Origin: Guillardia theta CCMP2712
Taxonomy: Eukaryota; Protista; Cryptophyta
NCBI RefSeq assembly: GCF_000315625.1
Contig: NW_005434660.1
Location: 296,711-360,710 of the forward strand
Reading direction: 5' to 3'
DNA: 64,000 bases
The translations under genes and the position numbers were made by a program. How positions within the stretch are numbered: the stretch's first letter is position 1; each line of letters begins with the position of its first letter. This document shows, in pieces, positions 3,381-39,968 of the stretch. The notes below the pieces were generated by a model. The model was not told where the DNA came from and searched no databases. It was given only the letters and a program-made list of their open reading frames with translations.

Positions 3381-5425
3381 ATGTTGATGTACAAGGTTTT
3401 AAATTGGGGCTCGTTACCTTATGTATCGCTGGATGGCAGCAGCAGCGAAGGCTCAGGGGAGAGCAGCGGAGAGAGATCGAAGGTAAGGCAGCAACCCATT
3501 GCCACGCGTGAAAGGCATGTCATGTATGGCAAGGTGAAGTGAAAGTTGCCATGGATCTTAATTAAAAGATCCGTCCCGATGAGCTCCTTTGAGCAGATGC
3601 GCCTGAATGGCACTTATGTGGAAAAGAGGCAGCTAGGACTTTTGTTTTCAATCTCGATGTTCATCTCTGGATCTCACTAGCAGCTGAATGGCAGATGAGC
3701 AACTGAAGCAAAACCAGAAGGAACCCGACAAAAGGCGATGATCCGGCTTCTTATAATATACTGTTTGTTTATGTGGGTGGGATTTTTTGTCGTCCTGTAT
3801 ATGAGGAACGAGCTGGGGTTGCCAACAAAAGGTACCAACGTTGATGACGACCTTCATTGCAGCTGACGTGATATGTGTCCTGCAGGAAATGAAGAAAAGG
3901 AGTCAGGTGAATAAACTTGCTCGAAGATACTTGCGATGTTTTCGGTGCTGAATCGTAGATGGGTAGTCTGCGCAAGGAGTCAGCTCATATGGATATGGAG
4001 GCTTCCTGTCGGGTGCGATTTCTCCGGGTTCTTCGTCGAGCTTCTTGGTTATCTCCCGCTTTTCCGCGGTATCACCTCCTCGTGCAAACCCTCCTCTGAA
4101 TCTTGAACGTTGCTGCAGAGAAAATCGATTTCTTCGCCTTGGACAGCGGCGAATGTCACGAGGACTTCTTGTCGATCTTGTCTGAGAAGGAGTCAACAGC
4201 CATAAAGGTTCGGGGATTTCTCATTCGATGCAGTGCTCTTGACCTGCGCTTGTGAGCAGGAAACTCATCGTAAAATGGATGCCCTCAAAAGTGGGAAACA
4301 GCCAAATGCCAAGACCATTGTTATTGAACATTCAGAACCTTGTGCATGGTCGAAGGTAGAGATGAAAACTTTGATTTTCCCTCGTTCTTCAACACCCTGA
4401 CTGTTCATGTGTTCGTCAGTACTTGCCTCTTCAGAAACCAGACGTCTTCATTGGACGAACCATGACGGAGTCTTGGACGCTTGACCACTCTTGGGTTCGG
4501 TGTGCTCAAAGGGTGGACGAGCTCTGGGTTCCCTCTAAATGGCATGTCGAGGCCTTTAAGAATGCTGGAATCCCCGAGGACAAGCTGATGGCAATGTGAG
4601 AAACTTTCTGAAAGGAAAAGTGCTTGTTGTTGCTGACACTTTCTGGCTGCAAGTCCTGAGGCAGTAGACACTGAATTCTTTGATCCTGCACTCGCTAAGA
4701 AGCAGGAGCGGCATTCCGATGATCTGGTCCTGCTTTCAGTCTTCAAGTGGGAGCATCGCAAGGGATGGGATGTACTGTTGGACGCCTACTGGTCTGCATT
4801 CACCCCGCAAGACAAAGTTGTCTTGAAGATAAGGAGCTACATCCCATCGTGGGAAGGAGGGCTCACCGAGATGCATGCTAGGGTAACCCAGTACGCCAAG
4901 ATGGAGTCGCCGAACCGTGTCAAGTACTGGAGGGAGCACAAGGGCGAGGATACCAGCATCCCTTCTCAGCTCGACGAGCTTGCTAGGATCGAGTTCCTGC
5001 AGGGAGGACCAACGATCCAAGAAGGAGCCTTGTCGAGGGCAGAGATGAGGGACCTGTATGCTTCGAGTGATGTGATGGTGCTCCCGACGAGAGGAGAAGG
5101 CTGGGGCCTTCCGATTGTGGAGGCCATGGCTATGGAGCTCCCGGTCATCGTTACCAACTTTAGCGGGCCCACTGAGTATCTCACGGAGAGTAATTCGTAT
5201 CCTATCGGCTACTCGATGGTAGAGCGACACAGCCACATGTACGCAGAGCCAGACTTTGATCAACTTGTATCAACGCTACGACATGTATTTGCGAATGCTA
5301 AGGACAGGGCGGCGAAGGGCAAGCGAGCAAGACAAGACATGGTCAAGCGATTCTCTCCCAGTGTTGTAGTCGATCAGATGATTGATCGCGCTAATTTCTT
5401 ACTGAGTAATAAAACCCGAATTTGA
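3381..5425 (+). CDS. Glycosyltransferase family 4 (GT-B fold), multi-exon
   Basis: HSEPCAW, GRTMTE, VDELWVPS, PEAVDTEFFDP, FKWEHRKGWDVLL, GEGWGLPIVEAMAMELPVI (EX7E motif); stop at 5425; start uncertain. Confidence 0.85.
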
Positions 5426-12699: not shown

Positions 12700-13647
12700 T
12701 TATCGGCCCATTGGATGGCCAAGAGCGTTGATGGACATGATCCCTCTCGAGTGATGTCCCACCTTCTGGCGCTTCTTCGCTGGCATAGATGTGGAGATCT
12801 GGAACTGAAGCTCATGCAACCTGTTCATGATGACACGAAGTCTGCGCTCATACATCATGAGCTCCATTGGCTGCTTGCCCTCAATCAGACGGACAAGCAC
12901 GTCCAAGTTGTCCAGGCCATTCTCAGAGCAGACAGCCTGCACTGCAGGAGGGAGGGGCTGAATAGGAGCAGAGTTGCCACCCATCGATCCCTTGAGCTTG
13001 CTTCTCTTGCGTCCAGGGATTCCCATGGTAGCACCGCTGGCCTTCAGTTGCTCTGCTTTCTCGGTCCAAGGCTTTCTTTCCTCCTCACTGAGCGCTTTCC
13101 ACATAGCTCCAAGATCCTTGACGTCAAGAGGGGTAGTGTGGCCTGCTTCCTTGTGCTCCTGCCTCTTGTCTTGGCAGAAGAGAAGGTATGACGATGGAGA
13201 GGGGGCGCTGGTTGCTTTGGGCTCAAGCTCGTTAAGAACGGTCTCAAGGCAACGACAGAAGTCACTCTTGTCTCCCCAGTACCGACGCTCCTCCTTGGGG
13301 ATCTTGGCTTGGCGCTCGGTAGCAGCAGCCTCAACAATGGCGCGAGGAACATTGAAGGTGGCGAAGTCAGGACCACTTGCAACAAGCTGCCAGCCATTCA
13401 AACGCTGGAGCACAACTTCGCGGTGATGAGTCCAGGCCTTGTAACGCATGCCTCCGTTCATCTCAGGATCCACGATCTTACAAGTCAATTGGATCACGTC
13501 TCCACCTCCCTGAAGGCCGGCAAGAGTATGGACATCAACAGGGCCATGATGTCCAACATTGTCGCCAGAATCCATGGCGAATGGGAAGCGAAACTGGTTC
13601 TCGGAGGAACTGCGTCGCTGGGAGAGCATAGCTTGAATCTCCTGCAT
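12700..13647 (-). CDS. HMG-box DNA-binding protein, intronless, 315 aa
   Basis: APSPSSYLLFCQDKRQEHK...VKDLGAMWKALSEEERKPWTEKAEQLK is an HMG box; C-terminal PAKKRQK is NLS-like. Confidence 0.88.
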   Translation of the reverse strand: MQEIQAMLSQRRSSSENQFRFPFAMDSGDNVGHHGPVDVHTLAGLQGGGDVIQLTCKIVDPEMNGGMRYKAWTHHREVVLQRLNGWQLVASGPDFATFNVPRAIVEAAATERQAKIPKEERRYWGDKSDFCRCLETVLNELEPKATSAPSPSSYLLFCQDKRQEHKEAGHTTPLDVKDLGAMWKALSEEERKPWTEKAEQLKASGATMGIPGRKRSKLKGSMGGNSAPIQPLPPAVQAVCSENGLDNLDVLVRLIEGKQPMELMMYERRLRVIMNRLHELQFQISTSMPAKKRQKVGHHSRGIMSINALGHPMGR

Positions 13648-14947
13648 TGTAGAAATGTACTGCTCAGAAACAAAGTTGATGTCCTACCCGAAACAGAGTC
13701 GCGCAGGGAGCAACAAAACGAAGGAACGCACAAACGAACCCGCTGCTGCTAACAGGAGGAGGCAGAGAGTGCGGGAAAGGAGCACAGAGGGGTGCGGAGG
13801 AGGATGAGGTAGGGGTAGCGTCCAGGAAAGTGTAGAGACGCTTTGTGGGGTGGAGGAACGATGAGGGGGTGGGCGCCAAGAGGAGGATGGATCAGCGGGG
13901 TGGGTCCCACTCGCCGCGGAAGAAGAGGAGGTAGAGGTAGGGGCCAAGGGAGGCAGGAGGGGTGTAACTGCCAATAAATTAAAAAAAACAAATTCAAACA
14001 TGCAGGTACTGATAGACAACATATTGGATCCTGAAATTCTACTGGAATACCAACTAATCTTTGAATTATTTTTTCTCAAGTTAACCAAAGATACTGACCG
14101 TCTGTTAGTTTTTTTCAGGGTGGGTGGCGGCCAAAAAGGGGTACCACAAGAAGGGGTGGGGGTGGCCTTCCAAAAGAAGGGGTAGTGAAGTTGACCGGTA
14201 GTCACATTCATGTACCCACCCATGGGAAATTTTCTAACATGGAGCACGTACAAAAGTGCCCTTGATCACCCCTACCTAAATTCAAATTTTCGATTAGAGG
14301 GGGTGGGGGTGGATCATGCCAGCTTGAGTGGGGTTCGGGGGTAGGGGGTCATGTGATTGTTTGAATACATAAAAAAACCAATGCTCATCACTCGTACAAC
14401 ATGTTTGAAATGCGCTAGGAAACGAGCACAGAATGCTTCTTATTCTTTGTTTCTAGCCCGATTTATCCAAAACTAACTCGCTATGAATCCGCAGTTAAAA
14501 AAAATCAGAATGATCCGCCTCTGCAGGCAAAACACACCTATTTTGCAAGTGTACATATTGCATTCTAGGTTTTTTTTCAAGACCCACCCGAATCCAATAA
14601 CTCGAAATAGATCCAAGTACCGTGCAGTTCAAGATCAAAATCACCCGTACAGCCATAACCCCTACCCTCTGATAAAGCCCAAAAAAAAATAGTGGACAGG
14701 TTGGCCTTCTTCAGGTGAGTGGCCGGCGGCCCGGCCCACCGTGTTTGCCCGAGTCAACGCCACTGGCTGGGGCCGCCCGGCTGCAGTGACTGCGGCACTG
14801 TCAAGCCTGAGCCTTGCCGCGCGACGCTGACGGTCGCCGTGAGGACCGTACTGGCTCACTGATCGGACTGAGTCACGCCGGACTCCCGGAGCCTGGGCCG
14901 GGCTCCGAGTCAGTGAGTCGCGGCGTCCGGCGACTCAAAATCATTCC

Positions 14948-17088
14948 CATTCTGGGGTCAAACCGCGTTGGTTCTCGTCCCATATTTTCAAGGGGGTGGT
15001 GCATGGGAAAATGGGGGTACACGGCGTGTGATTCGCGCAGGTTGAAATTCTGTACTGTTGAAATTCAAACCATGTTCAAAACTGTGATTAAAAGTGATTT
15101 TGGATGTTTAGCTTATCGTTTCCTGGTACCTTCTAAAATGTTTTAATTCTACACGCCATCACCCACTACCCCAGTGCGTCTTCCCTCGCCATTCTTCTCT
15201 CATGTCGCGAAGCTCTTCTCTGCGGATCCTTGTCTTCAGTGTTTGAGTTTTGTGCGAGCATGTTAGCCCAAGTTGCAGTGACTCGCAGCAGGTGACTCTC
15301 ATCAACATCTCTCTTCGTCAAACCCTCTGCGTCGGTTGGTGAAAATGTTATTATGCCATAATCTGTTTCAAAGTCTGGATCATATTTTTGAACGCATCCA
15401 TGGAAGGGGACGAGTAAACCACGAACACACACGAGCATGAAGAGACTCTCAAGTATTTTGTGAGAGGAGAAGGTGCAAATGAACTCGTTCCATCACACAG
15501 GTATGGAGTTCTTCTGTGGATTGTTCATTTTCTAATCGTTGTGCACAGGTAGCAAAAGCCTGGCGATGTTGAGAACTAGATTCTGCATGCTTGTAGCTGA
15601 AGCGTATTGCAAAAGTCCAAGAGCTTTATTCCATGCAGACTTTCATCTTTATGTGCTGGATGGAATATCATATTTATGAGAGATGCTTCACTGTGCCACA
15701 TGACTTGTTCAGATCATGTTTGAACTTCTCCGCCTTTGAATGATGCATCTCTTGTTGCATGACTTCAAAACACTTTGTGAAGATGCATAGTCTTGTATAT
15801 ATCCATGTCCACATGCTCAAAGCCTTGCCTCTTTGTGACAAACAAGATTGAAACCTCTTCAAGACAGCAAACTCAACCGCACGGTGTTGGATGGCAGTGC
15901 ACCTACAGCATGTGCTTCCATTCTGTTGTGCGCGCAGTTGGAGAAGTTCCATATGACATTGTGGTTGTCATTATCATTGTCTGGGAGTCCGTGTCAATTT
16001 GCTGATAGTTCGACATCCTGAGATAAACGCTTCGAATGAATAATAAATGTCAAATCAGATATCACCTCCAACCTTGATTCTACATTAATGTCAGTCTGGT
16101 TGCAACGCACAATGGATTCTTGCATGCCAGCTTACAAGCTTGAGTCTTGATCCCTGATATGATCTGAGGCTTAATTGGACGTCAAAAGCTCCACCATTAG
16201 GGAAGCCAAGCAAAGTTGATGTATTTCAGCAAATATGCAAACATGCAAATAACCTGAATGAGGAGAGTTTGAAGAGAGGAGGGAAGAATCAACAAGAGCG
16301 TCGTGAGAGTCAAGTAATTGGCATATTTCAAAGAAGCAGAAGTCATCAAAGTTGTTCTGATGATGTGAAGCAACGATGTATCGAAGCGTACAGAAGATTT
16401 GCCGTGCCGAGGAGGGAGTCAAGTGAGATGTGATTGCACCTTAATTAAGCGGACTCGTCATTATCTTACAGATTATCTTATTCAGTTCACTTTTCAGATA
16501 AAGTACATTACTCTGAGAGCCCAGAAGTCTTGAAGAGAAATTGATGATACGATTGACTTAGTCGTTGGAAATGTAGGATGACGAACTCATGCAGCCTTGA
16601 TCCACTTCTACAAGATCACCATGTCAGAATATGTGCTGGATTCTTGATGCCAATGGTACCTTGCGATCATGTTCTTACTTGGCGGTTCTTCACCTGTGCT
16701 CATGGTGGCAGCTCGCTGACCTTGCTGCTGTGCTCGCCCGGCGGCTCAGCATGACGGCTCGGAGTGCGATTAGACGATGGGAATGATGGGAGCGTTTCCC
16801 CACCCTCATTGATAGGGTGGGTCATCAAAATTGTTTTAGATAGTACAAATTAGCAGTTATGAACCGTTACTCAGTACAACTGTTTGTACCACGGATTCGA
16901 ATAAACAATTCATTGCCGTTAAAACAAATGGACACGCCAGTTCAAAATTTGAAGCACCCCTACCACTGATATTACCGAGCAACACCCCTCAAAAAACATG
17001 GGGTACACTACCACCGGTATCCTATGAGAACAGCATACGCATTCCTCTTTTGCGTTAATAAAGACCAACGCGGTTTGACCCCAGAATG
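14948..17088. mobile_element. 2.1-kb DNA transposon-like element with 25-bp perfect TIRs and a 3-bp TSD
   Basis: CATTCTGGGGTCAAACCGCGTTGGT (14948-14972) is the exact reverse complement of 17064-17088; TCC flanks both sides (14945-14947, 17089-17091). Confidence 0.9.
15166..16752 (-). pseudogene. Decayed intron-containing gene of unknown family inside the TIR element
   Basis: Frame MLSRRASTAARSASCHHEHR*RTAK*EHDRK|KWIKAA*VRHPTFPT...; stops and His/Cys codons explicable by C>T changes; last exon is ORF 15166-15438. Confidence 0.5.
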
Positions 17089-18877
17089 TCCGCCATCGGA
17101 TCGGCACCGTCCGACTCCGGCGAGTCACGCCGTGCGCCGTGCGCCCGCCGGCGGGCGGCGCCCGAGGCTGCCACCGTGCCCGGCGGAGTCCGATCACTGG
17201 CGCAGTCCGATCACGGCCACGTGACGCCCGGCGCGCCGGGCGCTCAACAGTGACGCCGGATCCGAGGCCCTCAAAATGCTCCTGGCAGCCGCAGTGACCG
17301 CTCACTGATCGGATCAGACTGAGTCACTGCCGCTGCACAGCCGCACGGTTTGAACCGAAGGTCTCAGGCTGAGGCTACGGCCGCAGTATCCGATGATAGC
17401 CTATACCGTACGGTCACGGTACTCAGGCCCGATCGCCGGACAGTCACGGTACCCGGCGTTCTCCGGCCCCCGGCCGTTCAGCCAAATAAAAGTTGGCCCG
17501 GCCCCGGCCCGGAGTCCGATCATGATGATAGCCTAGTACTACCGTAGCCTATCATAGTATACCGTACTGACAGCCTGAATCCGATCACGGTACGCCGGGC
17601 CGTTCACGGTTCTCCGGGCCGTTCCAAATTTGGCTCGGCGGCGCCGGGCCGGGCGGCCGCGGCGGGGCCGAGAGTCGGAGCCTCAGCCGCCGCTCTCAGA
17701 TCGACTCAGTGCCACGGTGATCGAGTCGGAGGCCGGGAGCCGCTCCGGAGTCCGGCGCCGTACGGGCGCCGTTCCAGCGCGGCCCGGCCGCCGGCGCCGC
17801 CCGACTCCCGTCAGTAAGGTCCCCTTCGTACTGATTCAAAGCTTTAACTTAACTTTGACTCAAGTTGAGTAAAGAAGGCCGGCCTGTCACGTGACCGGGT
17901 CCGGGCCGGCGATCCGATGATCGGGCCGGGGCCGCCCCGGCTCAGCGGCTCGCCAGGCTCCCTGACTCTCAGATCGACAGAAGTCCGCAAAACCGGCAGA
18001 CCGAATCCGATGACCCCCGGGGCAAAAACATGAAAAGCAAGGATTTCGGAGGAGATTTAGAGATTAAAACTTCTTAAAACTATCTAAGTTTTACAATCAT
18101 GAAAGGTAGTGTTGTGGTGGAATTGAGGTCTCAATCGAGATCTTGGATGCTCTTGTTGAGTCCAAAAAACGTCTTTTCATTCAGAATTTGGTATCTCTTG
18201 CTTATATTTCCTCTCTAAAAATACTTCTGAAGTATATCTTTTTATGAATTTAAAACATTTAAAAGTAACTCAGGGGCCAAGGAATCGACGGGGTTGTATT
18301 ACAGAGCCTAGCACCGGTCCCCAGTATTGGATGAGAAATGAACGGGTTGTTTGTAAGGATGAATCGCCTTCAAGGGGGTGGGTCAAATCCAGTTGTAAAC
18401 GATATTCTATTTGTGCAAGGGTGGTGGGGGTGGTGGGGGTACATATCCAGTTGGAATCGGGAATGAGGGGTTATTTCCCTATTACGGACGGTGGGTAGGA
18501 AATAAATCAGAACCAGAGGGGGTAGGGTGGTCAGTTTGTTGATGTTTTTGTTGGTTGGTTCTCCAGGACTTCATGTGGTGGGTACGTAAGAAGTACGGGT
18601 CCATTTCCACGTATTTGGACTTGTTTGAGGGGTGGGGGTAAACCATTGGAGGGGTTTAGGTGGGTGGTGGAGAGTAGGGGATAAATAAGTTGCAAAGATG
18701 TTTCGTAGCGCAAGGAGACATGGAGAGAAAGAACGACGAAGAGAAAGTAGTGCGAGGTCTAACAAACATGTTGACCTGATATTCGTCGAGGAAGGATGTT
18801 AGAAGAGAAGACTAAGATGACGAGGCAACTAGAATACAAAATACGGCTGGGGAGACATAGATAATATTGAAAGCAGA

Positions 18878-32977: not shown

Positions 32978-34436
32978 TTTGACTTTAGTGTGTAGTGAGG
33001 GAGGAAGGAGGAGGAAGGTGAGGATGGGAGGTCGGCAGAGACTAACGTAAGGTATTGTGTAAATTACTACAGGGGAATGTGTGGTAAATTTTCCAATCTC
33101 ATGTCACTCTTCGACGAACAGTTCTAGTTTGAAATCTTTGAAAAGCTTCGTAGGTGCTAACCCATGATGCTTACAGTCATCATTTCCTTTCTTTACCCCT
33201 CAAAAAGTCAGCAAAGCAGAGTGATGCGCGTTGTAAACAGGTCACTGTCTGTAAAATGGTGACATCGACTCAGACTAGCTGTTTGCTCCGGCTTTGCCCA
33301 GGGGCCGGGACGTTCCCCTCAGCGCCCGGCCCGCCCGGCCGGGTTGTCGGGACGGTCGGTCCCGTCACACCGTCGGTCTTTAGTACTCAAAGTTAAGTTA
33401 AAAATCAGTCGGTGCTGATAACTCCGCCGCCTCCGGGAGGCACGGTCACGGAGTCCTGGGCGCGGCCGGGCCCGGCCGGGACTCCGCTCGCCGCCACCCG
33501 GCCGGGCCCGGCGTGGCAGTGGCGGCGAGCAGCGACGATCATCGGCGGCGGACCGTGAAGTTCGGGCGCCGGTTGGCGGCCGCACTGCAGTCACGGCGGC
33601 CGGGCTCAGCCGCTGCCGGGCGGCCACCGTGCGGCAGTGAGGCTGGCGCCCGGCCGCGCCCGAGACCCGGTGACTCCCGGAGGCGGGTCACCGGGTGCAT
33701 AGCGTTGCCGTTCCGTATCCTTGTCGGATCAGTCAACCAGGGTGGTTCTCATAGTAGTTTTAGTCAAATTAAAGCGGCAAGAGAAAATTGAGCTAAAAAT
33801 GTTTGCTCCGTCAATTTATGTACCTTTTTCGTTGCCAGGCCATCCAAGACGAGAAGGGCAATGTTGAGCAAAACCTTCCTCTATTTGATATGAATAGGCG
33901 TGTATAGTTGACTAAATAATCATGAGGTGGCTCGGGGTAGGTATTCAAATGATTTGAATCTTTCCAACGGCCTCCAGCCCGTGTTGAGGGGTAGGGGGTA
34001 GTGCAAACTTCTCGTATCAATCTAAAACACTTGTAAACGACCTCACACTTGCCCCGGTCTCTTCCCTATCCCACTACTCCCAATGTACTCAGGGACTGTT
34101 TGCTCAGCTGCTGAGCGCAGTCAAGGACCATGGCCCCTCAATGTTAACTCCTGAAAGTGCCAGGCAAGTACTGAGATCAAACAGCTCAATTCTTGGCTGA
34201 GAATCACACCTATAGTAGGTTGAATGTGAAAGGTATGCATCGAAATTTGCACTTGCGTACCAAAGCACTCATCAGCTATAGGTGCTGGTTATTCACTTCC
34301 AGAAGAAGGGAAACATGAAGGGAACCGATCAGAGAAGCAACCTTCGAAGACATAAAGGAAATTCGATTCTCCTTGTTGTGTTGACGCCCTAGCTTCCTTT
34401 ACCTGAATGCTTCGTCGGTTGAATATGAAACATATT

Positions 34437-35700
34437 TCAAGAGACTTCCTGTTGCTTTGCCATGATTGCGTTTTTTGAGGCTTCTCCCAACCTATTGTAA
34501 TATGGCGGTGTCATTTGTGAGGAGGTGAGGAGTTTGAGAGGCTGGGGGAAGGAGAGGGGAGGGGTTGGAAGGGAAATGGACGCCTGGGAGGCCAGGCTAG
34601 TTGATATGCCTGATCGCTGCGAGAGGAGATGCCGGAGGAGAGACTGTTTACTCAAGACCACTAGCGAGGAAGGCAGGAGGGCGAGGAGGACATGAGAGGA
34701 GAGGAAGGAGAAAGCTACGGGTAGAGACGGTTTACTTGACAGCACTAATGAGGAAGGGATGCTTCAGAGCCTCCAGTGCCGTAATCCTCGTGCGGGGATC
34801 GATGTCGAGGCAGCAGTTGAGGAAGTCCCAGATCGCATGTTTCTCATCCACCTCCAGCCAGTCCTTGCATCCCGCATGCGCGCCCAGGGAGCTTGACAAG
34901 GTCCGCCATGTTTGCTTGAAACCGCGGGCATAGCTGAGATGCAGTTCCAATGGTGGAATCTGAATGACATCAAGTTAGCAACCTCAGGCCTCCCTCCTCC
35001 ATATCACCCTCATCCTCATCCTCTTGATACAACAACGCCGACGACAACAATTTTACCTTAACGTCGAGCTTGAAATCTTCGATAACATCTCTGATCTTAT
35101 CTCTGTACTGACCCGTATACCCATAGTTGTGCTTCCACACAGCATCCATGCTCTTGATGTACATGCGCAAGCTGCTCAGACAGTCAGACAAGCGCACTTC
35201 CAAGGTACACAAAGAGATCTCCATCGTTGCCGTGACTATGTCGTTATGCTGGAACCATTGGAACTGTGTCGTGCGGCACAGCAGGGTAAGCAGTACTACC
35301 CCAGCAGCCCACACGTCCACTGCTGTGGTCTGGCACTGCATGCCCATGAGCACTTCGGGCGCTCGGTATCCCCGAGTTCCCGCGCGGTTGACTGGACGTT
35401 CGAATTTGACCCCTGAGTTCCTCACTGTCACCGATGCGTTCGTCTTGCTGACGCCCAACATGATCCGCCTCTTCGCCATCTGCTGCGCCATCTCTAGTTT
35501 CTCCTGCTCCTTTTGATTCCGCGAGGAGCGAGAGCTGGCCGTAGAAACCTCACAGGGCAAGATGTTGCCGATGCTGCGGCCTGATGAATGCATTTGTTTC
35601 TATGCCAGCCCAAAGTCCACAAGCAAGTACTTCTTATTCCTTCTGTCGTAGAGCCTCCGAGGAAGTTATTCAATTTCACGTCTCGATGTATAATAAATGT
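34437..35700 (-). pseudogene. CDC7: CDC7-like Ser/Thr kinase pseudogene, 5'-truncated
   Basis: IIHRDVKLNNFL/YDRRNKKYLLVDFGLA* with an 8-bp frameshift (35651-35658) and a TAG at 35600-35602; RAGTRGYRAPEVL..QTTAVDVWAAG; LDIDPRTRITALEALKHPF; subdomains I-V not found. Confidence 0.85.
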
Positions 35701-36365
35701 ATAATGTATAAGACAGTTCTTGCTCAAGACCGAGTTTAATGCACACTGTGACACGAAACCACTGAGAATTGAGGCAGCACCGTCTGCACATGAGACGTGA
35801 CTCCCGACTGTCACAGTGGTATGCTAGAATATGAAACTCAAGCATCATTGCAACGCCGCCGCTGTTCATCACACGGACGGCCCACTGCCCGGTACCGCCG
35901 GGCATTGCCGCCGCGTGGGGCCGCCGCCTGGCTCGGAACTTGACTCTCACCCGGGTCAGTGACCGTTCAACCGTTCAACGGTTGACTCACCGGTAGCCTT
36001 GAAGCCTGGGACCGGTCCGCCGGAGAGTCCGGCTCGCCCGGCCGCGGCCGTCGGACCTTGAGTTTTCAGTGTTCAATCATAACTGATGGCAGCGGGGCTA
36101 TCTGATCGGACTGGCCGCACTGCAGTGCGGCATGGCTGGCATGCTGATCCCGGCATTAAGAGTCGGCAGTGCCGACGGTGACCGTGTCACGCGCCGGGCT
36201 GCGGCCGCGCCGGACTCGACTCGGAGGCTCGGAGCCCGCGTCCGACTCGGAGGCTGGCCTGCCTGGCATTGCCGCGCCCTGAGCCCCGGGCGGCGCTGAC
36301 TCATGGCATGCCGGAACTTGGAACACTCAGTGCGCCCGAAATGATTCAGGGCCACAAAAAATATT

Positions 36366-36908
36366 TGGAACAACTTGAAAATTGAGGGGTTGTTCGGCCT
36401 GAAATCTTTGTGTGTCACGCAAGCAAGTCCAACCTACATGGAACAACGTGAAAATTGAGGGGGTGTTCGGCCTGAAATCTTTGTGTGTCACGCTCCTCCA
36501 AGTTTCAAGTTGTTCCATATAGTTTGGAGCAAGTCCAACCTACATGGAACAACTTGAAAATTGAGGGGATGTTCGGCCTGAAATCTTTGTGTGTCACGCT
36601 CCTCCGGCCTGAAATCTTTGTGTGTCACGCTCCTCCAAGTTTCAAGTTGTTCCATATAGTTTGGAGCAAGTCCAACCTACATGGAACAACTTGAAAATTG
36701 AGGGGGTGTTCGGCCTGAAATCTTTGTGTGTCACGCTCCTCCGGCCTGAAATCTTTGTGTGTCACGCTCCTCCAAGTTTCAAGTTGTTCCATATAGTTTG
36801 GAGCAAGTCCAACCTACATGGAACAACTTGAAAATTGAGGGGATGTTCGGCCTGAAATCTTTGTGTGTCACGCTCCTCCGGCCTGAAATCTTTGTGTGTC
36901 ACGCTCCC
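36366..36908. repeat. Tandem array, 137-bp period, each unit with a 65-nt hairpin and two copies of a 26-31-bp direct repeat
   Basis: Eight copies of CGGCCTGAAATCTTTGTGTGTCACGC (36395, 36468, 36574, 36605, 36711, 36742, 36848, 36879); three full palindromes with 27/30 paired arms and a GCAAG loop. Confidence 0.97.
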
Positions 36909-36926
36909 CGGCATCGCAAGTCAGCT

Positions 36927-38819
36927 TTGATGGCCATTATGGCCTTCACAGGCGTGGCTGGCCCTCCGAAGCTCAATCATGATGCATCGCCAATACGATA
37001 TCAAATATCAAAATAAAAATATCAATGTTGAAAGTTTCCCGCCACTGTGAACTCTGCGAAGCCGTACAGATATGAGGATGTGCAGCGTTTGACAGAGCAA
37101 GACAAGTCAGGTGAGCATTTATCTCTTTTTTTTTCATCGAAATTATCACGGGAAGAGATCCAAATGACGTGTTCTTGATGCAGGTTGGAATGATTTGCAG
37201 CCTTTGGCAACTTGTATGAGATTGATGAACGGGTGAAGACTTTGGCAAGTGCCCAACCAATATTACAAACCGGTATCCAGGAGTACGTAGACGTACCAGT
37301 AAGCCGCCCAGCATACAAAACTCTCGAGACAATGGCTGCATACGAAGGGGTTTTCGACACATCGCAGAACTGTCCCGATGTGAAAAGGTTGTGACATGAA
37401 ATGGGCACAAACAAAGATAAGTTCAGGACTCGGGAGTCGATCAGGTCTAGGCAAAATATTGACATGGTCATCTCACTGCATGGAAGAACATGCAAAACTG
37501 AAGGAAAAGCTCAACAGAAAGTTCTAAATGAACATCTACAGCGCATTTTAGCAGTCACGGTCGGAGCAGGTTGATGCTTGAAACAAAGATGATCCTCAGT
37601 ACAATCGAATGATGACAAGTAAGTCCCGTGGTTCGTGAAGGATTCTTCATCCAATTCTTAAGGATGTGTTGGAACGATGAAACATTTTGCAAATCACCAA
37701 TTTCATCACACTGACTGATGCATCATGTAAATATTACTGGTGTGAACTTGCATCAGATTCTGTTCATCGGATGAACCGCTACCAAGCAGTTGATGTCACA
37801 GCAAACAAGAGAGCCGTTTTGAAGATGCTGATATTCCTGACCGTAGAGCATTCAAGATGTGGCCACATGTCACATGCTTCTTGGTTAACGCAGATACACC
37901 CTCGCCAGGCAAAAGATGGAACGTCTTCAGGATTACAGGGAGGTCGGTTGTGCTTGTACCCTGATTGTAACTCTTCTAATAAAGATATGATAACCTGAAT
38001 GTGCAATTCTGTTTGTTGATTCACAGTGTTTGCGACTCGATTGCAATCATCGAGTGCTTGCTCTGTTGAACAAGGCACTCCTCTGTAGAGCCATGCGACA
38101 AGAACACTACAGTTGCACGGTAGCATTGCGACACCAAGACAGGATTGATCCGATGAACGTCTCATTTATTGATACGCAAAGGCGTCATCTGCACATTGTT
38201 TCATTTCTGACTAGGTTTCTGTGCAATCGAAATCCTTGTGAAAATATCATGAACGAGGAAAAATTTGAAGCGAAACGGAAAAATCATCGAAATATGATCA
38301 TGGATATAGTGATTCATGATCAACAACGGTTCTCTACAGTCATCTATGCGGGCAGGAACAGTCATCTTCTGTGCAAACGTCTCTTCATGTATCGTTGAAC
38401 GGTTGAGTGCATGTAAGACTTGCCTCCATAGAAAGGTGAAGTGCATGAATCCTGACTGTAAGACTAGAAGAATTGAAAGCAAGTGATGACATGAGAACAC
38501 ATATCTAGACAGAAAAGTCGCTCAAGGTACAGCTGGATACAAATTTCTCACAAATCACAGTCATGCATTTGAGCGCAACGTGCAACCTACGGCAATTTGA
38601 ATAAAGGGTCAATCAGAGTTGATTCTGTTCAATGGTGTATCGATTATCAATTCCTTACCTGATCATAAAAATTTCATCTTGTCTTCGAAGAATATTTGCA
38701 AGTACACCCGCGGATTGTTTGAACCTAGGGTGCATATTCCATTGCAGGATGGATGATTCAAAACCTTGGCCCAACCTGTAGAGTTGAGAAAGAAGCTCGA
38801 TCATCTCTTACAGGTATGA
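36927..38819 (+). pseudogene. Decayed multi-exon gene of unknown family inside the 5.8-kb element
   Basis: Long frames interrupted mainly by TGA (e.g. LE*FAAFGNLYEIDERV..KRL*HEMG; ~38340-38819); Cys cluster ACKTCLHRKVKCMNPDC. Confidence 0.55.
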
Positions 38820-39968
38820 TATGAGATCTTCATCTCATTTCTATCTCAGTTGGGTTGGATTCGAAGTCTCTCAATATCAAGGTTCATCCTGGTGAGTCAG
38901 GAAGGCACCATTTCATCGCTTCTTGCTCGTCCAGGGAGAGGGGGCTTGGGGAATGAGAAATGGGGGTTACCCCCACCCCCTATTGTAGAGTTTCAAACTC
39001 GTTCAAAGGTGGGTAGTTGAGGGTGCTCCATACCCACCCCACCACCCAAAATGACTCAAACGGAGGGGTTCTCGGATCCGAAGGAGTCCCGCCTCCATCA
39101 CCCCCTCTCATTTGAATTGAATGGTTCAGGCCGACCCCACATACAGGCTTGCAGTTTTCTTATGTATGCCCATATGATTTGATCGGACAGGCCCCAGGTT
39201 CAAGGGATGAAGCAATCACCAGCATGCTTGAAGATTTTTCATGGGAGTGGGGTTATACTTGTACCGGGTGTGTACAATACATAGGGGAGAACCCCGAATG
39301 GTATCAAAAGAGTACCAAAGTCACATGGTTCGGACTGTACTAACTGGTACCAAGAAATTGTACTCAAGAAGACCCTACCCCTGAAAAAGTCCTGCTTGGC
39401 TCTTCGTGATTTGAATTCGGAACACGGTCGGAAGACCCACCCCGCCCCCACATGAGGCGTGGTATGCGTGGATTTGAATCTACCACCCTCACCGCGAAAC
39501 GTTTTAGAGCTACAAGGTCAATTGAGAAAGGCAACGCTATGTGACTGGGCGCCCCCCCGCCCGGCCCGGGCCGCCCGGCGGGCGGCCGCCGCGCCCGGCG
39601 CCCGAGCTCGGAGTGAGTGATCAGTAGGCTCAGAGGCTAGTCACACTCAGCCCGGGTGCCGCCGGACCCAGTCCCTCTCAGGCTCCGAGGCTCCGAGCCT
39701 AATGACGCCGCCGGTGCCACGGACTCCGAGGCTCCAGGATACGATGATGAAAGAGTGCATGCAGTAAATTCAGTACCGTGTTATAATCTACACACGAAGT
39801 TGGGTTTGCGCTTGACCCGTCTGGCACGGTTCTGCTTCTCGTCCCCCAACGTTGACGTCCAGCTCGTGCAAATATTCTAAGAAATCATCCCTGCCGCAGC
39901 AGCAGACCACGTGCGTTCCAACCTGACACGGCCCGCATGCCCTGCTCGGCAGACGGGTCAGATTGATA

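Follow-up and report, generated by a model that had tools for sequence, protein, structure and literature searches.

A Non-Autonomous DNA Transposon with CA..TG Ends in Guillardia theta and a Two-Gene Element Predicted to Encode a RAG1-Fold Transposase

A 2.1-kb repeat of the cryptophyte Guillardia theta is located at positions 14948–17088 of the window (the whole 64,000-nt stretch of DNA analyzed here). Its ends and copies identify it as a non-autonomous cut-and-paste DNA transposon. Very probably, it is a passenger that shares its ends with a 5.3-kb two-gene element and is served by this master, whose transposase has a predicted RAG1 fold. The same explanation places the family as a separate lineage in the CMCT clade (CACTA-Mirage-Chapaev-Transib; Kojima 2025, PMC12730594).

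Structure and Copies of the 2.1-kb Element

The features of the element are listed in Table 1. The perfect 25-bp terminal inverted repeats (TIRs) and the TCC target site duplication (TSD) described in the sequence-only reading are both present. For an inverted repeat of 25 nt, shuffled sequences gave a chance expectation of 0 matches. The termini are CAT...ATG, and the element starts with CATTC. The GGGGT/ACCCC-rich subterminal zones noted in the same reading were also recovered. GGGGT is seen at element positions 7, 46, and 67, and ACCCC at 2009, 2037, and 2131. Such motifs occur at about 0.03 per 200 bp in the interior.

Table 1. Features of the 2.1-kb element, in window positions.
Feature	Position	Strand	Remarks
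Left TSD copy (TCC)	14945–14947	.	Directly abuts TIR
Left 25-bp TIR	14948–14972	+	Starts CATTCTGGGG; 100% complementary to right arm
Left terminal region	14948–15019	+	Homology with the autonomous element at its 3′ end (ORF2 side); GGGGT motifs
Interior	15020–16955	.	Non-coding, unrelated to the autonomous element (homology, coding, Pfam, and Rfam checks)
Right terminal region	16956–17088	-	Homology with the autonomous element at its 5′ end (ORF1 side); ACCCC motifs
Right 25-bp TIR	17064–17088	-	Complementary to left arm
Right TSD copy (TCC)	17089–17091	.	Directly abuts TIR

The proposal of one decayed spliced gene inside the element did not hold. No exons are recognizable in the interior, and its longest ORFs (up to 92 aa) gave no match in a Pfam scan. 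The interior has no match in Rfam and no similarity to the ORF1 and ORF2 proteins of the family described below. No codon-like 3-periodicity is seen in its substitutions. In other subfamilies, which are themselves recently mobile, the ORFs are broken by frameshifts and stops. These results rule out a coding interior and indicate that the 2.1-kb element codes for nothing, keeping only its cis sites.

Two checks had been suggested along with the original description, a genome search with the TIR and a table of TSD lengths, and both support a multicopy family with 3-bp TSDs. The TIR has 41 matches across the 87-Mb genome, and the reversed-pattern control has 0. The family comprises about 17 full-length copies in addition to fragments. 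Perfect 3-bp TSDs flank 13 of the 16 paired elements scored, and their sequences are varied, without a target consensus. The TSDs of the other three are imperfect, and one of these copies is identical to two others.

The copy at C2, on another contig, is 100% identical to the window copy over 2141 bp, and its flanks and TSD are different. Because of this identity between different flanks, the window copy is judged to have moved very recently. The copies at C10, C47, and C60 are also mutually identical. No empty-site paralogue of the window insertion was found in the genome, because the flanks of this insertion are unique.

A Two-Gene Element with the Same Ends

A 5.3-kb element with a TSD of AAC is located at G000:C154:116038-121368. 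It carries two intact genes, ORF1 on the plus strand and ORF2 on the minus strand. They are convergent, with about 110 bp between them, and both lie within the TIRs. C285 carries a relative 92% identical to this element.

The 2.1-kb and 5.3-kb elements share only their ends (about 135 and about 75 bp), and their interiors are unrelated. The left end of the 2.1-kb copy corresponds to nucleotides 5261–5331 of the autonomous element (72 bp, 81% identity), and the right end corresponds to nucleotides 1–132 (135 bp, 75% identity). Based on the unrelated interiors and a subterminal identity of only 75–81%, the likeness could be regarded as a coincidence, the 2.1-kb family being moved by another transposase. 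This is very improbable, as the first 18–25 nt are identical between the 2.1-kb element and the elements at C154 and C285, and each asymmetric subterminal region aligns with its counterpart, end for end. Besides, the right TIR of the C154 element is the subfamily-C TIR, and GTTGGT forms the final six bases of the TIR both in the C285 element and in the window copy. The TSDs of the two elements, AAC and CTA, are 3 bp long as in the 2.1-kb family. The sequence-only reading had suspected recent mobilization in trans. The identical copy with a different TSD and flanks elsewhere, and a two-gene element sharing nothing except the ends, both support this view.

Predicted Proteins of the Two-Gene Element

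The predicted structure of ORF1 is that of a DDE transposase and has the RAG1/Transib fold. The mean pLDDT of the model is 73, and that of the core is about 90. The best 49 Foldseek matches are all RAG1, RAGL, or Transib proteins, with a best E-value of 1.7e-9. Comparison by VIA gave Z 21–22 for RAG1 (431 residues aligned) and Z 21.7 for HzTransib HFC (419/480 aligned), followed by Z 15 for the P element and Z 9 for Hermes. About 210 additional residues, of low-confidence structure, are present at the N-terminus relative to HzTransib and RAG1. The Atlas language-model search with ORF1 placed RAG1 clusters first (0.95). Atlas structure matches to Transposase_21 and Plavaka clusters (TM 0.5–0.63) are about equal to those to RAG1.

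The putative catalytic residues D312, D410, and E737 are invariant among 23 sequences with identities down to 14–20%, including relatives from Cymbomonas and metagenomes. In the same set, C431xxC434 is positioned 21 residues past D410; C434 is invariant and C431 is at least 90% conserved. H706 and H712 (H706x5H712), 25 residues ahead of E737, are invariant. The dN/dS ratio of ORF1 is 0.31.

At the sequence level, ORF1 matched no Pfam model at E up to 1–10, including Transposase_21, Plavaka, the RAG1 models, and the newer RAG1 sub-domain models. Neither RAG1 nor Transib came up among PDB sequences, whether the query was ORF1 itself or a profile built from 9 or 23 sequences. PF12940 and PF02992, searched against the genome, did not match the ORF1 loci; PF02992 yielded a single weak, unrelated fragment. 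An exhaustive profile search with ORF1 collected 99 relatives. None of the 10 scanned against Pfam had a match, and 10 from an overlapping set that were looked up are all hypothetical proteins or without a name. Word-based protein searches gave matches only in Guillardia, Hanusia, and ENA contigs. Since RAG1, Transib, and CMC are not matched at the sequence level, the proposed homology of ORF1 to RAG1/Transib is based on the predicted model and the order of motifs.

The model of ORF2 is a mixed alpha/beta structure. For residues 53–202, the 16 best VIA matches are all BAH domains (Z 8–11), and the next non-BAH match has Z of 5 or less. Foldseek agrees with BAH (E 6e-5). The N-terminal half of ORF2 is thus predicted to be BAH-like. 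Pfam contains no BAH or other family match for ORF2, and the Atlas search was uninformative (score 0.84). A RAG2-like kelch-propeller partner was considered and rejected, as the fold of ORF2 matches BAH and none of the matches is a propeller.

At least 20 diverged ORF1/ORF2 pairs are present in the genome, and all are convergent. No TIRs were recovered for these other lineages, whose loci were too short. The dN/dS ratio of ORF2 is 0.19. ORF2 invariably accompanies ORF1, and purifying selection acts on it.

Proposed Transposition and Its Significance

The 2.1-kb passenger would rely on its 25-bp TIR and on the asymmetric GGGGT-bearing subterminal sequences of about 75 and about 135 bp that it keeps. 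After binding to these shared ends, ORF1 would cut the element out and insert it elsewhere by a 3-bp staggered cut, which would generate the 3-bp TSD. By analogy with RAG1 and Transib, excision would probably start with a nick, followed by hairpin formation on the flanking DNA. ORF2 would act as an accessory subunit, possibly for chromatin or target choice.

It can be speculated, tentatively, that the family is its own superfamily-level lineage in the RAG1/Transib-CMC clade and represents a second RAG-type transposase of two subunits that was assembled independently. Its RAG1-fold enzyme would depend on a BAH-fold chromatin-reading partner, not RAG2. Such a transposase would be active today in a cryptophyte, and the non-coding derivatives that it mobilizes, among them the window copy, would land in GC-rich islands.

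The classification puzzle posed by CA..TG ends with a 3-bp TSD finds an answer in a transposase of predicted RAG1/Transib fold, unrecognizable by sequence. A natural donor/helper pair is available in the 2.1-kb passenger, identical copies of which occupy separate sites, and the intact two-gene masters. This pair could be used to probe how a RAG1-fold enzyme works with a 3-bp stagger, and whether a chromatin-reader partner does for ORF1 what RAG2 does for RAG1. It bears on the origin of two-gene RAG-type machines, and may provide a transposon tool for cryptophyte genetics.

Classification and Comparison with Known Transposons

PIF/Harbinger elements resemble the Guillardia family in their 3-bp TSD and two ORFs. 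They differ from it in the TWA target, the transposase fold, and the Myb/SANT partner. Only TTA among the 13 perfect TSDs fits TWA, no match to DDE_Tnp_4/Plant_tran or Myb was found, and the predicted fold of ORF1 is RAG1-like. The fold and the target sequences refute a PIF/Harbinger-type element, the probability of which is practically nil.

Members of the CMCT clade have a D-D-CxxC-H..H-E series with H(3–4)H before the catalytic E, 5′-CA..TG-3′ termini, and TSDs of 2–5 bp (PMC12730594). Like them, the Guillardia family has C(2)C past its second D, a His pair ahead of E, CA..TG termini, and a TSD of 3 bp as in EnSpm. Short subterminal repeats and non-autonomous derivatives are also common to both. 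In contrast, its ends are CAT rather than CAC/CACTA, its His spacing is H(5)H, and its transposase gene has an obligatory, convergent partner whose predicted fold is BAH-like. No sequence similarity to transposases of named members was detected (Pfam, PF02992, and PF12940). The family was found only in cryptophytes (Guillardia and Hanusia); remotely related sequences occur in Cymbomonas and in metagenomes.

As an alternative to a separate lineage, the elements could belong to an ordinary, catalogued CACTA/EnSpm (CMC) family whose second protein is TnpA-like. Such a family would have the same TSD length, CA..TG ends, subterminal repeats, and two-protein layout, and it would be in line with the Transposase_21 and Plavaka matches in the Atlas. 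Nevertheless, this assignment is rather unlikely. The terminus CATTC is not CAC(TA), PF02992 (Transposase_21) has no match in ORF1 or in its paralogues, and the predicted fold of ORF2 is BAH-like. To our knowledge, TnpA has no BAH-like fold. Searches of the literature for EnSpm or Transib in Guillardia had no result. The ends, the TSD, and the motifs are considered to indicate a probable separate CMCT lineage that fits no named member compared. The sequence-only reading, a divergent CMC-like or unclassified family, pointed in this direction. The family may already be catalogued.

HzTransib (PDB 6pqx) and RAG1 share with ORF1 the predicted whole-core fold, from the DDBD to the C-terminal domain (Z about 22 over about 420–430 residues), and the order of catalytic and zinc-binding residues. 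This could suggest a true Transib/RAGL member whose stagger shifted to 3 bp and whose RAG2-like partner was swapped for another protein. The first rank of RAG1 clusters by language-model features and the convergent genes, as in ProtoRAG, are in favor of it, and so is the RAGL element of another alga (AanRAGL, a RAG-like two-gene transposon of Aureococcus; PMC9435367). We consider it improbable. No sequence match was found to PF12940 or the newer RAG1 sub-domain models, or to RAG1 or Transib in the profile searches of PDB sequences. The TSD is 3 bp and not 5 bp, the termini are CAT, the TIR has neither a CAC heptamer nor a nonamer-like sequence, and the model of ORF2 is no kelch propeller.

As in ProtoRAG and RAGL, the transposase and partner genes of the separate lineage proposed here lie tail to tail within the TIRs. 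The TSD length (3 bp versus 5 bp) and the ends differ. The partner, BAH-like by prediction, differs from the kelch propeller and PHD finger of RAG2, and by analogy with that PHD finger it may likewise read chromatin.

Termini, Copies, and Target Sites

The element in the window is delimited by perfect terminal inverted repeats (TIRs), and dinucleotide shuffles of the window give a chance expectation of none for such an inverted repeat. TCC abuts the element on both sides as the target site duplication (TSD). The motif GGGGT is seen at element positions 7, 46, and 67, and its complement ACCCC at positions 2009, 2037, and 2131, against an interior density of about 0.03 per 200 bp. These facts confirm three features named by the sequence-only reading: perfect 25-bp TIRs, a TCC duplication, and GGGGT/ACCCC-rich subterminal zones. 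GC-rich islands flank the element, which itself has a higher AT content. The C-terminal part of an ORF upstream of the element resembles an HMG box by eye.

Positions of the features (C numbers, contigs of Guillardia theta; L numbers, excerpted loci; other positions are those of the window)
Feature	Position	Size	Remarks
Window element	14948–17088	2141 bp	Bounded by inverted repeat
TIR pair of window element	14948–14972 / 17064–17088	25 nt	100% complementary; inverted-repeat search
GC-rich island around window element	14700–14947 and 17089–18025		100-bp GC 0.6–0.8; many short palindromes
Upstream ORF	12700–13647	315 aa	− strand
Second CAT..ATG-ended element	33698–39541		TIR 16 nt, 94% complementary
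Repeat cluster inside second element	36428–36837	74-nt repeats	Inverted and direct; 80–90% identity
C2 copy	C2:182168–184308		TSD TTA
C10 copy	C10:742782–744885 (L032)		Flanks CAC / GGC
C154 (master) element	C154:116038–121368 (= L031:1539–6869)	5331 bp	Inside one TIR pair; TSD AAC
ORF1	C154 element	920 aa open frame	+ strand; GUITHDRAFT_119696
ORF2	C154 element	381 aa	− strand; tail to tail with ORF1, ~110 bp apart
Tandem repeat, 5' region of C154 element	C154:116346–116977 (= L044:909–1500)	262 bp, three copies	
C285 relative	C285:586–26312 (L029, L045, L057)	25.7 kb	Swollen; family TIRs; TSD CTA; 92% identical to C154 element
Further ORF of C285 element	L045:325–1473	383 aa	

The sequence-only reading had proposed a search with the TIR and a tabulation of TSDs. 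In the genome (87.1 Mb, 669 contigs; the window is C14:296711–360710), 41 sites match the TIR with up to three mismatches, and the reversed control pattern matches none. TSDs were scored for 16 elements, 14 paired copies of 2.09–2.17 kb and two long coding elements. Perfect 3-bp TSDs are seen in 13 of them (TTA, TCC, GCC, TTC, TCA, GCT, GAC, TCA, AGC, TGA, GTT, AAC, and CTA), and the other three are imperfect (GAC/GGC, GGT/GTA, and CAC/GGC). No target consensus is found among the 16, which excludes a TWA target; the family is not PIF/Harbinger.

A DNA search with the interior of the window element revealed about 17 full-length copies and about a dozen fragments; the copies fall into three subfamilies about 8% apart. 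The C2 copy is 100% identical to the window element over all 2141 bp, and their flanks are unrelated. Since the flanks of the window element are single-copy in the genome, it represents a separate insertion, not a duplicated segment. The copies on C10, C47, and C60 are also mutually identical. The flanks of the C10 copy do not match each other despite this 100% identity, as if the copy, once inserted, had been rearranged or had recombined with another. About half of the family is inserted in GC-rich stretches, and the mean flank GC of insertions is 0.59 versus a background of 0.51. The window element is a genuine transposon of the non-autonomous type that was active recently.

The second CAT..ATG-ended element in the window is flanked by GTG and TGA, which have at most TG in common and make no clean 3-bp TSD. 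It probably represents another family of the same kind.

Interior of the Window Element

The longest ORF found by a scan of the interior is at most 92 aa. The ten longest interior ORFs have no significant match in Pfam (the sole match, DUF6026 at E 0.028, is far under its cut-off), and the interior shows no match in Rfam and does not resemble the proteins encoded by the family itself. Subfamilies differ from one another at 267 sites, which are evenly spread without codon periodicity. Frameshifts and stops interrupt the four longest ORFs in other subfamilies, and the subfamilies with broken ORFs still hold identical, recently moved copies. The decayed spliced gene read here from sequence alone is therefore unsupported; the interior is not a gene.

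Long Coding Elements

The similarity between the window element and the C154 element is limited to the ends. Their outermost 18–20 nt are identical. The right 135 bp of the window element shows 75% identity to the left end of the C154 element, and the left 72 bp shows 81% identity to the right end. Beyond the TIR, left and right ends are asymmetric, and in the alignment each end pairs with the corresponding one of the other element. Subfamily C has exactly the TIR found at the right end of the C154 element. The identical copy at an unrelated site, and the ends as the only part in common with an intact two-gene element, bear out the earlier proposal of recent mobilization in trans.

The TIR of the C285 relative has two mismatches overall to that of the window element, and the last six bases, GTTGGT, are the same in both. 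This relative contains an ORF1/ORF2 pair (92% identical) near the right end and a fragment of the ORF1 start near the left end. Its extra length could be either nested insertions or captured cargo.

As the first ~52 codons of the ORF1 frame fall in the tandem repeat, the true start is probably Met102, preceded by 101 codons, giving a protein of 819 aa. Comparison of the C154 and C285 copies gives dN/dS values of 0.31 (ORF1) and 0.19 (ORF2). At least 20 further ORF1/ORF2 pairs are present in the genome, with identities as low as about 25%. Every pair is convergent and most are intact, indicating that the two-gene unit is old and conserved.

Proteins Encoded by ORF1 and ORF2

ORF1 has no match in Pfam or among PDB sequences, and profiles built from 9 or 23 sequences do not change this. 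Against the genome, the RAG1 profile (PF12940) finds nothing, and Transposase_21 (PF02992) finds one weak, unrelated fragment only. An AlphaFold model was built from nine paralogues and orthologues (mean pLDDT 73, core ~90). Foldseek reported 49 significant PDB matches (best E 1.7e-9), and every one of them is RAG1, HzTransib, or the RAGL of amphioxus. In VIA-align, residues 212–799 of the model are superposed on RAG1 459–1003 (Z 21–22, rmsd ~4 Å, 431 residues). The HzTransib hairpin-forming complex scores Z 21.7 (419 of 480 residues aligned), followed by BbRAGL (Z 20.4), P element (Z 15), and Hermes and ISCth4 (Z ~9.5). RAG1 clusters are at the top of the Atlas language-model search (0.95). 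In the Atlas structure search, TM is 0.5–0.67 and similar for RAG1, Transposase_21 (CACTA), and Plavaka clusters, so the fold cannot separate Transib from CMC.

Among 23 sequences with identity down to 14–20%, including a Cymbomonas protein and metagenome proteins, D312, D410, C434, C568xxH571, H706, H712, E737, and H740 are invariant, and C431 is nearly so. Their order and spacing parallel those of D600, D708, C727xxC730, H937x4H942, and E962 in RAG1. The predicted fold of ORF1 and its motif set are of the RAG1 type. Remote relatives of 900–1770 aa, in which Pfam domains are absent, are found in the green alga Cymbomonas tetramitiformis (P0044) and many metagenome contigs (P0032–P0088), indicating that the lineage extends past cryptophytes.

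Relatives of ORF2 were found by protein search only in Guillardia, Hanusia phi, and a few ENA contigs. In its structure model (mean pLDDT 74), residues 53–202 match BAH domains alone; the 16 best VIA matches are at Z 8–11, unrelated ones are at Z 5 or lower, and Foldseek gives E 6e-5. This region is predicted to take a BAH-like fold. A RAG2-like kelch propeller is excluded by the BAH-only matches.

Possible Mechanism of Transposition

The ORF1 protein would bind the TIRs and the subterminal GGGGT-bearing regions, both in the master and in its 2.1-kb passenger, cut the element out, and insert it elsewhere by a cut with a 3-bp stagger. On the model of RAG1 and Transib, excision would probably begin with a nick, after which the flanking DNA would form a hairpin. 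ORF2 would be an accessory subunit, possibly tying the enzyme to chromatin. It can be speculated that such a link bears on the bias to GC-rich islands.

Comparison with Known Systems

No literature was found on Guillardia with Transib or EnSpm, or on BAH-domain partners of transposons. Strict CACTA is ruled out by the absence of CACTA ends and of a Transposase_21 match. Transib and RAGL have 5-bp TSDs and CAC ends, and RAGL also has a RAG2-like partner; the Guillardia family has none of these, which rules out strict membership in either. This holds even for AanRAGL, found in an alga, with its CAC ends and 5-bp TSD (PMC9435367). The CACTA-Mirage-Chapaev-Transib (CMCT) clade is characterized by C(2)C and H(3–4)H motifs, mostly CA..TG termini, and 2–5-bp TSDs (PMC12730594). 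The Guillardia family agrees with it in termini, TSD length, and C(2)C, and the His pair of ORF1 is spaced H(5)H. Sequence similarity of ORF1 is absent for every named CMCT member tested. The earlier wording, "divergent CMC-like or unclassified", fits both the CA..TG ends, 3-bp TSD, and C(2)C and this lack of a sequence match. The family is probably a separate lineage inside the known CMCT/RAG1-fold kind, set apart from the named members tested.
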